Made by a program: the position numbers and the translations under genes. A DNA stretch of 64,000 nucleotides from Hemiscyllium ocellatum (taxonomy: Eukaryota), in assembly GCF_020745735.1 (NCBI RefSeq), contig NC_083419.1, forward strand, positions 27,116,085-27,180,084. The letters run 5' to 3'. The notes under the pieces were generated by a model, which was given only the letters and a program-made list of their open reading frames with translations, did not search any database and was not told the origin of the DNA. Within the stretch, counting starts at the first letter, position 1; every line of letters starts with the position of its first letter. This document shows, one piece after another, positions 11,006-62,650 of this stretch.

Positions 11006-14000
11006 ACATAGAACATAGAACATAGAAAAATACAGCGCAGTACAGGCCCTTCAGCCCTCGATGTTGCGCCGATCCAAGCCCACCTAACCTACACTAGCCC
11101 ACTTTCCTCCATATGCCGATCCAATGCCCGTTTAAATGCCCATAAAGAGGGAGAGTCCACCACTGTTACTGGCAGGGCATTCCATGAACTCACGACTCGT
11201 TGAGTAAAGAATCTACCCCTAACATCTGTCCTATACCTACCACCCCTTAATTTAAAGCTATGCCCCCTTGTAATATCTGAGTCCATACGTGGAAAAAGGT
11301 TCTCATGGTCAACCCTATCTAAACCCCTAATCATCTTGTACACCTCTATCAAGTCACCCCTAAACCTTCTTTTCTCCAATGAAAACAGTTCCAAGTGCCT
11401 CAGCCTTTCCTCATACGATCTTCCTACCATACCAGGCAACATCCTGGTAAACCTCCTCTGCACCCGTTCCAGTGTCTCCACATCCTTCCTATAGTATGGC
11501 GACCAAAACTGCACACAATACTCCAGATGCGGCCACACCAGAGTCTTATACAACTGCAACATGACCTCAGGACTCCGGAACTCAATTCCTCTACCAATAA
11601 AAGCCAGTACACCATATGCCTTCTTCACAGCACTATTTACCTGGGTAGCAACTTTCAGAGATCTTTGTAAATGGACACCAAGATCCCTCTGCTCATCCAC
11701 ACTACCAAGTATCCGACCATTAGCCCAGTACTCCATCTTCTTGTTACTCTTACCAAAGTGAATCACTTCACACTTAGCTACATTGAATTCCATTTGCCAC
11801 CTATCTGCCCAGCTCTGCAGCTTATCTATATCCCGCTATAACCTGCCACATCCTTCCTCACTGTCAACAACTCCACCGACTTTCGTATCATCCGCAAACT
11901 TGCTCACCCAACCTTCTAGCCCCTCCTCCAGGTCATTTATAAAAATGACAAACAGCAATGGTCCCAAAACAGATCCTTGCGGAACACTGCTGGTAACTGC
12001 ACTCCAAGATGAACCTTTCCCATCAACTACTACCCTCTGTCTTCTTCCAGCCAGCCAATTCCTAATCCAAACCTCCAACTCACCCTCAATGCCATACCTC
12101 CGTATTTTTTGCAGTAGCCTACCATGGGGAACCTTATCAAACGCCTTACTAAATTCCATATACACCACATCAACCGCTTTACCCTCGTCCACCTCCTTAG
12201 TCACCTTCTCAAAGAATTCAATAAGGTTTGTGAGGCACGACTTGCCCTTCACAAAACCATGCTGACTATCCTTGATCACATTATTCCTATCCAGATGTTC
12301 ATAAATCCTATCCCTTACAATTCTCTCTAAGACTTTGCCCACAACAGAGGTAAGACTCACCGGCCTATAGTTACTAGGGTTATCCCTACTCCCCTTCTTG
12401 AACAAGGGAATTACATTTGCTATCCTCCAGTCTTCTGGCACTATTCCTGTAGACAACGAGGACATAAAAATCAAGGCCAATGGCTCTGCAATCTCCTCCC
12501 TTGCTTCCCAGAGAATCCTAGGATAAATGCCATCAGGCCCAGGGGACTTATCTACATTCACCCTTTCCAGAATTTCCAACACCTCTTCCCTACCTACCTC
12601 AAAGCCATCCATTCTAATTAATTGTGACTCAATATTCACATCAGCAACAATGTCCAGTTCCTGAGTGAATACTGACGAAAAGTATTCATTCAGTGTCTCC
12701 CCAATTTCTTCAGCCTCCACACGCAACTTCCCACTACTATCCTTGACGAGACCTATTCCTACCCTAGTCATCCTTTTATTCTTGACATACCTATAGAAAG
12801 CCTTTGAGTTTTTCCTAATCCTATCAACCAAGGACTTTTCATGTCCCCTCCTTGCTGCTCTTAGCTCTCTCTTTATATCCTTCCTGGCTACCTTATAACT
12901 CTCAATCGCCCCAATTAAACGTTCACGCCTCATCTTTACATAGGCCGCCCTCTTCCCTTTAACAAGGGATTCCAATTCCTTATTAAACCACGGCTCCCTC
13001 ACACATACTCTTTCCTCCCTGCCTGACAGATACATACTTATCAAGGACACTCCGTAGTTGTTCCTTGAACAAGCTCCACATTTCGATTGCACCCTTCCCT
13101 TGAAGCCTACTTTTCCAAGCCATGCATCCTAAGTCATGCCTCACCGCATCATAATTTCCCTGCCCCAGCTATAACTCTTGCCCTGTAGTGTACACTTATC
13201 CCTCTCCATCACTAGAGTAAAAGTCACCGAATTGTGCTCACTGTCCCCAAAGTGCTCACCTACCTCCAATTCTAACACCTGGCCTGGTTCGTTACCCAGA
13301 ACCAAATCCAGTATGGCCTCACCTCTTGTTGGCCTGTCTACATATTGTGTCAGGAAACTCTCCTGCACACATTGGACAAACACCGACCCATCTAACGTAC
13401 TCGAGCTATAGCTTTCCCAGTCAATACCTGGAAAGTTAAAGTCCCCCATAACAACCACCCTATTACTTTCACTCTTCTCCTGAATCATCCTCGCAATCCT
13501 TTCTTCTACGTTTATAGGACTATTAGGAGGCCTGTAGAAAACTCCTAACAGGGTGACCTCACCTTTCCTATTTCTAAGCTCAGCCCAAACGACCTCAGAT
13601 GGCGAGTCTTCATCCATCGTCCTTTCCACTGCTGTAATATTATCTTTGACAAGCAATGCCACATCTCCCCCTCTTTTACCCCCACCTCTGACCCTACTAA
13701 AACATTTAAACCCTGGAACCTGCAACAACCAATCTTGTCCCTGTTCTACCCATGTCTCCGTAATAGCCACAACATCGAACTCCCAAGTACCAACCCACGC
13801 TGCAAGTTCACCTACCTTATTTCGTATACTTCTCGCATTGAAGTACACACACTTCAAGCCACCTTCCTGTTTACAGGCACCCTCCTTAGAGATTGCTGCC
13901 ATGTTCCTAACCTCTCTACACTCCAGGTCCTGCACTCTAAAACTACAGTCTAGGTTCCCATGCCCCTGCAGAGTTAGTTTAAACCCCCCCGAAAGAGCAC

Positions 14001-60870: not shown

Positions 60871-62650
60871 AAGGAAGGGAGAAAAGCCACCGATACAGCC
60901 AGGTAGATGGGTTACCTCCAGGAAAAGTAGGAAGGATAGGCAGGTTGAGCAGGAGTATTCTGTGGCTATCGCATTTCAAACAAGTACGCTGTTTTGGAAA
61001 ATGAAAGGGGTAATGGACTCTCAGGGGAATGTAGCATGAACAGCCAAGTTTCAGGTATCGAGACTGGCTCTAATGTAAAGGGGTGTGACAGGGGACTCTC
61101 TAGTCAGAGACACAGACAGATGTTTCTGCAGCCAGCAGTGAAATATCAAAATGATGTATTGCCTACCTGGTGACAGGATCAAGGATACCTCAGATTGGGT
61201 GCAGAATATTCTCAAAAGGGGAGAGGGGCCAGCAGTAGGTCATTGTACTGTAGCTCAACAAGTAATCCAGGTATTACTGACCTTGAGGACCTCCTTTTTA
61301 AATTTCTGCCTAACTTTTTATATTCTCTGTTCAGAATCTCATCCTTTTCCCTTCCTGTGTCATTGGTTCCAATGTGTACATAGAACATAGAACATAGAAC
61401 ATAGAAGGATACAGCGCAGTACAGGCCCTTCGGCCCTCGATGTTGCGCCGACCGAATCCTACCTAACCTATACTAGCCCAATAACTTCCAAATGCCTATC
61501 CAATGCCCGCTTAAATGACCATAAAGAAGGAGAGTTCACCACTGATACGGGCAGGGCATTCCATGAACTCACAACCCGCTGTGTGAAGAATCTACCCCTA
61601 ACATCTGTCCTATACCTACCACCCCTTAATTTAAAGCTATGACCGCTAATGGAGTCAGGTGTTACTAGGGGACATAGCTTTAAATTAAGGGGTGGTAGGT
61701 ATAGGACAGATGTTAGGGGTAGATTCTTCACACAGCGGGTTGTGAGTTCATGGAATGCCCTGCCCGTATCAGTGGTGAACTCTCCTTCTTTATGGTCATT
61801 TAAGCGGGCATTGGATAGGCATTTGGAAGTTATTGGGCTAGTATAGGTTAGGTAGGATTCGGTCGGCGCAACATCGAGGGCCGAAGGGCCTGTACTGCGC
61901 TGTATCCTTCTATGTTCTATGTTCTATGTTCTATGTACACATTGGAACCAATGACACAGGAAGGGAAAAGGATGAGATTCTGAACAGAGAATATAAAAAG
62001 TTAGGCAGAAATTTAAAAAGGAGGTCCTCAAGGTCAGTAATACCTGGATTACTTGTTGAGCTACAGGATAGTGAGGATAGGATAGATCAGATGAATGTGT
62101 GGCTGAGGAGTTGATGCAGGGGAGAAGAGTTCACAATTTTGGATCATTGGAATGTCTTCTGTGATAGAAGTGACCTGTAAAAGAAGGACAGATTGCACCT
62201 GAATTGGAAGGGGACTAAAATACTGGCAGGGAGATTTGCTAGAGTTGCTTGGGAGAATTTAAACTAGTAAGATGGGAGAGTGGGACCCAGGGAAAGAGTG
62301 AGGAAAGAGATTAATTTGAGACTGGTACAGTTGGGAAAAGGAGCAAGTTGAACAGTCAGGGCAGGAAGGAACAAAGCAGAGAACACAATAGGAATGATAA
62401 ATTAAACTGCATTTACTTCAATGCAAGAGGCCTAACAGGGAAGGCAGATGAACTCAAGGCATGGTTAGGAACATGTGACTGGGATATCACAGCAATTCCA
62501 TAAATGTGGCTCAGGGATAGATAGGACTGGTAGCTTAATGTTCCAGGATACAAATACTACAGGAAGAATAGAAAGGGAGGCAAGAGAGAAAGGGGAGTGA
62601 TGTTTTTGATAAGGAATAGTATTACTGCTGTATTTAGGGAGGATTCTTAC
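60871..62650 (+). mobile_element. Older CR1 5' region (ORF1 esterase into ORF2 APE endonuclease), interrupted by a fold-back insertion
   Basis: WVTSRK, SNKYAVLEN, CLPG.RIKD, HIGTND, DRLHLN, then LNCIYFNARGL, WDITAI. Confidence 0.88.
61248..62066. repeat. Perfect 394-bp-arm palindrome (61248-61641 / 61673-62066) made of a young CR1 3' end plus about 130 bp of flank
   Basis: Arms checked as reverse complements; the ORFs at 61468-61731(-) and 61649-61846(+) end in identical peptides. Confidence 0.95.

Follow-up and report, generated by a model that had tools for sequence, protein, structure and literature searches.

Several ways are known in which a retroelement can express its polymerase from an RNA that also encodes an upstream protein. 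The standard one in retroviruses and LTR retrotransposons is gag-pol -1 programmed frameshifting, in which the upstream structural or accessory ORF ends shortly after a heptanucleotide tandem-slip site and the polymerase ORF lies in the -1 frame without a start codon of its own (PMC5009743). The expected product is a minority fusion protein. Coronaviruses use the heptamer U_UUA_AAC, together with a complex pseudoknot a few nucleotides downstream, at the junction of ORF1a and ORF1b (PMC8499926).

Among non-LTR elements, the Dictyostelium retrotransposons TRE5-A and TRE3-A are said to require a -1 frameshift (PMC5911963). Mammalian L1 is thought instead to begin ORF2 by an unconventional, AUG-independent initiation, and SART1 uses UAAUG stop-start coupling (PMC3708506, PMC5009743). 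How LINEs translate their second ORF from a bicistronic RNA is a long-standing question, described as "not clear" in PMC3708506 and, for L1, as an unknown type of initiation in PMC5009743.

A candidate for a further case is found in CR1 elements of the shark Hemiscyllium ocellatum. The window analyzed is a stretch of 64,000 nucleotides (assembly GCF_020745735.1, contig NC_083419.1, positions 27,116,085 to 27,180,084 of the forward strand), and it contains two CR1 copies that include the junction between ORF1 and ORF2. The initial annotation proposed that a slippery heptamer at this junction links ORF1 to an ORF2 without an ATG. Its coordinates are all correct, and its interpretation is supported by the comparisons described below, although two of its details need correction.

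The older copy lies on the + strand and is decayed. A tblastn search with the ORF of the younger copy recovers the first part of its ORF1 esterase region at 61085-61237 (residues 73-126, 50% identity), upstream of a palindromic insertion. The last part of ORF1, at 61935-62267 (residues 128-232), carries the esterase C-terminus ..LAGRFARVAWENLN up to and including the stop. The esterase frame reads ..GAG AAT TTA AAC TAG, such that T_TTA_AAC occupies 62258-62264 in X_XXY_YYZ phase and the stop codon TAG abuts it at 62265-62267. The -1 frame, FKLVRWESG.., forms a linker from the heptamer to the endonuclease (62258-62401) with one in-frame stop (TAA, 62312-62314) and no Met. It reaches the start of the endonuclease domain, LNCIYFNAR, which is decayed and is detected at 62402-62647 (residues 281-365, 47% identity). 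The element is cut off soon after.

The younger copy lies on the - strand at about 14540-11007 and is truncated at its 5' end inside ORF1. It contains the esterase, the endonuclease, the reverse transcriptase, a C-terminal region and a (TTCTATG)3 tail at about 11027-11007. Its ORFs match Pfam PF13472, PF03372/PF14529 and PF00078, in agreement with the description of canonical CR1 in PMC13343379. The short microsatellite tail in place of poly(A) is likewise of a type that probably marks CR1. This copy has TTTAAACTA at 13983-13975, with the heptamer TTTAAAC at 13983-13977, a TAA directly after it at 13976-13974, and a G-rich block GGGGCATGGGA at 13966-13956.

The initial annotation cited the younger copy as keeping the same sequence at the same position, but it is not a second example of the two-ORF arrangement. 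Its esterase (PF13472) and endonuclease (PF03372) domains sit in one uninterrupted 518-aa frame (14697-13141), in which the heptamer is out of slippery phase and is read as F-K-L. A run of 7 G (13990-13984) precedes the heptamer. The closest comparable relative, a shark-type copy on a short contig (L023), has 6 G and ends ORF1 with GGG GGT TTA AAC TAA. The length difference lies in this run or nearby and puts both domains in one frame, while TAA remains in the phase where relatives have the ORF1 stop. It is therefore a copy, or an assembly, with a 1-nt length difference in a homopolymer, and not evidence for a single-ORF family.

The bare heptamer is not rare, since the window contains 25 copies against 16 expected. 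The signal lies in its position, phase and conservation. A search of genome contigs for more copies gave only 2 irrelevant bacterial hits, and a search of metagenome contigs gave 9 distant hits of 27-32% identity and no vertebrate CR1. A word search with the ORF of the younger copy and a second search with an alignment of ORF1 proteins returned esterase ORF1 proteins from sharks, rays, skates, an eel and frogs. Of the 73 that reach the C-terminal region, 62 end in L-N, and the 11 exceptions are L2-like teleost proteins or damaged copies. A third search, seeded with a bird-type ORF1, gave 117 amniote proteins, of which 80 end in L-N, typically ..RALN. They come from birds of more than a dozen genera, a turtle (Chelydra) and a snake (Erythrolamprus). 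In total 142 proteins end in this way. The residue before L-N varies (G, Y, T, C, D, S, A, I, L, F, H, V), but it is never K, E, Q, M or W, the five residues that lack an NNU codon.

The DNA around twelve such ORF1 genes was then compared. The sources are Mustelus, Leucoraja, Hyla, Hemitrygon, the bird Limosa (L005), the eel Synaphobranchus, a bird-type copy in a metagenome contig, an unnamed organism, a divergent Scyliorhinus family, and three shark-type copies on short contigs (L021, L022 and L023), one of which is filed as Pseudomonas aeruginosa. Many of the copies compared are decayed genomic insertions rather than proven active elements. All twelve junctions read NNT TTA AAC TAR at the end of ORF1 and have ORF2 in the -1 frame. 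In the decayed copy L005, a frameshift mutation further upstream means that the ORF1 tail, ..HRALN-stop, was read in a separate frame.

When these junctions and the two window copies are anchored on the heptamer without gaps, TTTAAACTA is identical in 14 of 14, drawn from at least nine deep lineages. The following base is always a purine, giving UAG in 9, UAA in 5 and UGA in none. By contrast, the 30 nt on either side have only 30-50% pairwise identity, and only 4 of 180 flanking columns are invariant among nine deep lineages. Positions that are silent for ORF1p are fixed as well. The codon before Leu always ends in T, under eight different amino acids, although T is 21% of third positions in the same ORF1 tails. 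Leu is always TTA (19% of Leu codons there), and Asn is always AAC (42% of Asn codons).

The ORF2 frame opens only 3-15 nt before the heptamer in nine of the twelve two-ORF junctions and 42 and 111 nt before it in two, and could not be scored in L005. Together with the abutting stop, this leaves a window of a few codons in which a frame change must occur. Between the heptamer and the endonuclease motif, a distance of 37-78 codons, the ORF2 frame has no stop in 10 of 10 lineages in which the motif is recognizable, while the other two frames have 2-10 stops. No start codon is conserved before the endonuclease: four lineages have no Met in the linker, and elsewhere the Met is at different places. 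In three apparently intact elements, L021, L022 and L023, the ORF2 frame runs for 671-873 aa to the end of the fetched DNA, with the first in-frame Met at residue 169, 36 and 203 of that frame. A natural contrast is provided by a distant esterase-ORF1 LINE from a metagenome (L009), which lacks the heptamer. It has UGAccAUG instead, and its endonuclease ORF starts at that AUG. No AUG lies at the stop in any of the 14 junctions.

No conserved downstream hairpin or pseudoknot partner was found. RNAfold z-scores for the 90 nt after the heptamer scatter around 0 in the 14 junctions, and quadruplexes are predicted in only three lineages. RNAalifold on the five alignable shark-family copies gave -1.96 kcal/mol with no compensatory pairs. 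These programs do not predict pseudoknots, so a non-nested fold is not excluded. What is conserved is a G-rich block, GGGG-N3-GGGA, at fixed spacing 10 nt after the heptamer. G occupies +17..+20 and +24..+26 from the heptamer start in 10-13 of 14 junctions (13 at most positions), and A occupies +27 in 11 of 14. The version of this block in the older copy is GGGAGAGTGGGA, at 62274-62285. In the ORF2 frame the block reads G-x-G, but the constraint looks nucleotide-level, since the Gly codons are nearly all GGG and the G at +17 is a third codon position under Q, L, W, G and K. A duplex search found no better-than-shuffled partner for it downstream. A tandem site G_GGG_GGU just upstream of the heptamer is present only in L023-like copies and so is not general.

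Taken together, this anatomy makes it probable that the junction is a programmed -1 ribosomal frameshift site of the CR1 clade of LINEs, although the slip itself, its efficiency and any role of the G-rich block are inferred from sequence and not from experiment. In the proposed mechanism, ribosomes translating ORF1 reach U_UUA_AAC with Leu-tRNA in the P site and Asn-tRNA in the A site. Most go on to the UAR stop and release ORF1p. A minority slip back one base to UUU_AAA, then read CUA and continue through the linker into the endonuclease and reverse transcriptase. The product would be an ORF1p-ORF2p fusion, made in small amounts relative to ORF1p. Because the A-site Asn is decoded before the slip, the predicted junction is ..x-L-N-L.. 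and not F-K-L, with which the initial annotation began the -1 frame. For the older window copy it is ..ENLN-LVRW... The absence of a detected fold tells against this model, since a heptamer without a stimulator would usually be expected to shift only weakly. Conservation also extends beyond the heptamer, to CUA and the abutting UAR, so slipperiness is not the only constraint acting, and overlapping coding in two frames could hold some of these bases.

The main alternative, considered unlikely, is that ORF2 is translated separately, by termination-dependent reinitiation or by an AUG-independent initiation like that proposed for L1. In this model the conserved 10-mer and the G-rich block with its GGGA core would hold or re-engage the ribosome after it stops at UAR, which would suit both the abutting stop in 14 of 14 junctions and the constraint beyond the heptamer. 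However, no AUG or conserved near-cognate codon lies at or near the stop, and the model does not explain why the conserved bases form a perfect X_XXY_YYZ heptamer in ORF1 phase or why the ORF1-silent positions are fixed. The G block also lies downstream of the stop, while tethering motifs in viral reinitiation appear to lie upstream of it. It is more doubtful still that the motif is held only by protein constraints, namely a needed C-terminal x-L-N on ORF1p and a needed F-K-L at the start of ORF2p. Most single changes in the heptamer would indeed alter one of the two peptides, and L-N is near-universal at the ORF1p end. Yet a change of the last C to T would be silent in both frames, and UGA would keep both the stop and Leu (CUG), and neither is seen in 14 junctions. 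The rest of the linker and the ORF1 tail are poorly conserved, and F-K-L would have no way of being translated without a start codon upstream.

An equally doubtful possibility is an RNA or DNA element with a non-translational role, such as an ORF1p or ORF2p binding or packaging site or an internal regulatory site, whose resemblance to a shift site is coincidental. The nucleotide-level constraint on the G block and the lack of a structure typical of shift sites could be read in this way, but not the exact phase with ORF1, the abutting stop, the -1 relation of ORF2, the short overlap window or the lack of a start codon. Finally, the family might normally have one continuous esterase-endonuclease frame, as in the younger copy, with the older copy having merely lost one base to create a chance heptamer and stop. 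L005 also reads through. This reading is contradicted by the comparative data, since in eleven of the 12 outside junctions and the older copy ORF1 reads straight into the abutting stop with ORF2 in the -1 frame, and the tail of the twelfth, L005, still shows that arrangement in a separate frame. Splicing across the junction, suggested by the resemblance of CTAAC to a branch point, was rejected because a spliced retrotransposon RNA would lose the segment in its progeny.

No mention of frameshifting in CR1 was found in the literature searched, which included a 2026 survey of CR1-group elements (PMC13343379), a survey of ORF1 in the Jockey superfamily (PMC4120745) and the ORF1 esterase structure paper (PMC3905857), although an early remark on the frame relation in Haas 1997/2001, Kajikawa 1997 or Kapitonov and Jurka 2003 cannot be excluded. 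If the frameshift holds, it sets the ORF1p:ORF2p ratio and predicts that the enzyme carries the esterase domain at its N-terminus. It also gives a rule for annotating intact CR1 elements, since ORF2 should not be started at the first ATG, and adds a deeply conserved cellular-genome example to the eukaryotic -1 frameshift signals. A bolder and only tentative extension is that CR1 LINEs, the dominant LINE clade of non-mammalian vertebrates, make their reverse transcriptase only as this fusion, with the slip stimulated by the linear G-rich element, perhaps through a bound protein or the ribosome itself, rather than by an RNA fold. That would be a new type of eukaryotic frameshift stimulator, kept since before sharks and bony vertebrates diverged. 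A minority of known stimulators begin 12-15 nt downstream and can be linear RNA acting with trans factors (PMC5009743), and the G block could be of that sort.

Compared with retroviral and LTR-retrotransposon gag-pol, the CR1 junction has a tandem-slip heptamer and a -1 polymerase ORF without a conserved start codon, but the host is a non-LTR LINE with no protease to separate the fusion, no stem-loop or pseudoknot was detected with the methods used, and the overlap is minimal, with the stop directly after the heptamer. The coronavirus element shares the identical heptamer in identical phase, but in place of its pseudoknot only a G-rich block starting 10 nt downstream is conserved in CR1. TRE5-A and TRE3-A belong to a different clade and host kingdom. 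With them, frameshift-dependent ORF2 expression in a LINE-like element is not without precedent. The CR1 signal is conserved across jawed vertebrates. L1 and SART1 face the same problem of a bicistronic LINE RNA whose second ORF must be made in small amounts. L1 has an inter-ORF spacer and SART1 an overlapping stop-start with an AUG, while CR1 has a slippery heptamer, a -1 frame relation and no conserved AUG.

The ORF1 of the old CR1 copy is interrupted by an inverted repeat of 409 nt, whose arms occupy window positions 61240-61648 and 61666-62074. The two arms are 99% complementary and are separated by 17 nt. The repeat contains a CR1 3' end, together with about 130 nt of the old copy's ORF1 copied in reverse.

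In the young CR1 copy, a homopolymer of 7 G (13984-13990, - strand) puts the esterase and the endonuclease in one frame. Relatives have one base fewer in this stretch. The difference could represent a real mutation, or may be a homopolymer assembly error. A different feature is found in L023, one of the shark-type copies on short contigs, where the codons before the heptamer read CAG GGG GGT (1127-1136 of that locus). These form a second formal slippery pattern, G_GGG_GGU, which is in phase. This pattern is lineage-specific and probably of no consequence.

Downstream of the heptamer, a conserved GGGG-N3-GGGA block lies at a fixed distance. It is found in the window at 62274-62285 and 13956-13966, and in the junctions from other genomes (L001-L005 and L017-L023) at +17..+27 from the heptamer. 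G is kept at silent codon positions within the block, and no pairing partner was found for it.

Vertebrate CR1 sequences sit in bacterial assemblies, where they are named “SGNH/GDSL hydrolase family protein” of P. aeruginosa and Klebsiella pneumoniae (protein records P0008 and P0330, and locus L022, a record filed under Pseudomonas aeruginosa). Since L022 carries a complete shark-type ORF1 plus 841 aa of ORF2, this is host or sample contamination. Gene models in ray and shark genomes that are named after host genes (hydroxyacid oxidase 2, ribosomal protein S24, MINPP1, and UBE2G2; protein records P0001, P0021, P0053, and P0088) consist wholly or partly of CR1 ORF1 or ORF2 sequence. These are likely annotation chimeras.

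Judging from the protein sequences alone, the signal seems to be limited to the canonical CR1 clade. The more distant, L2-like esterase ORF1 proteins of teleosts (Lates, Cirrhinus, and unnamed; protein records P0185, P0188, P0193, P0195, P0202, and P0207) do not end in L-N. A different solution from the CR1 heptamer can be found in distant esterase-ORF1 LINEs in metagenome contigs. These join their ORFs as UGAccAUG (about 555-565 in locus L009, and about 1937-1947 in loci L012 and L015), so that ORF2 has its own AUG two bases after the stop.
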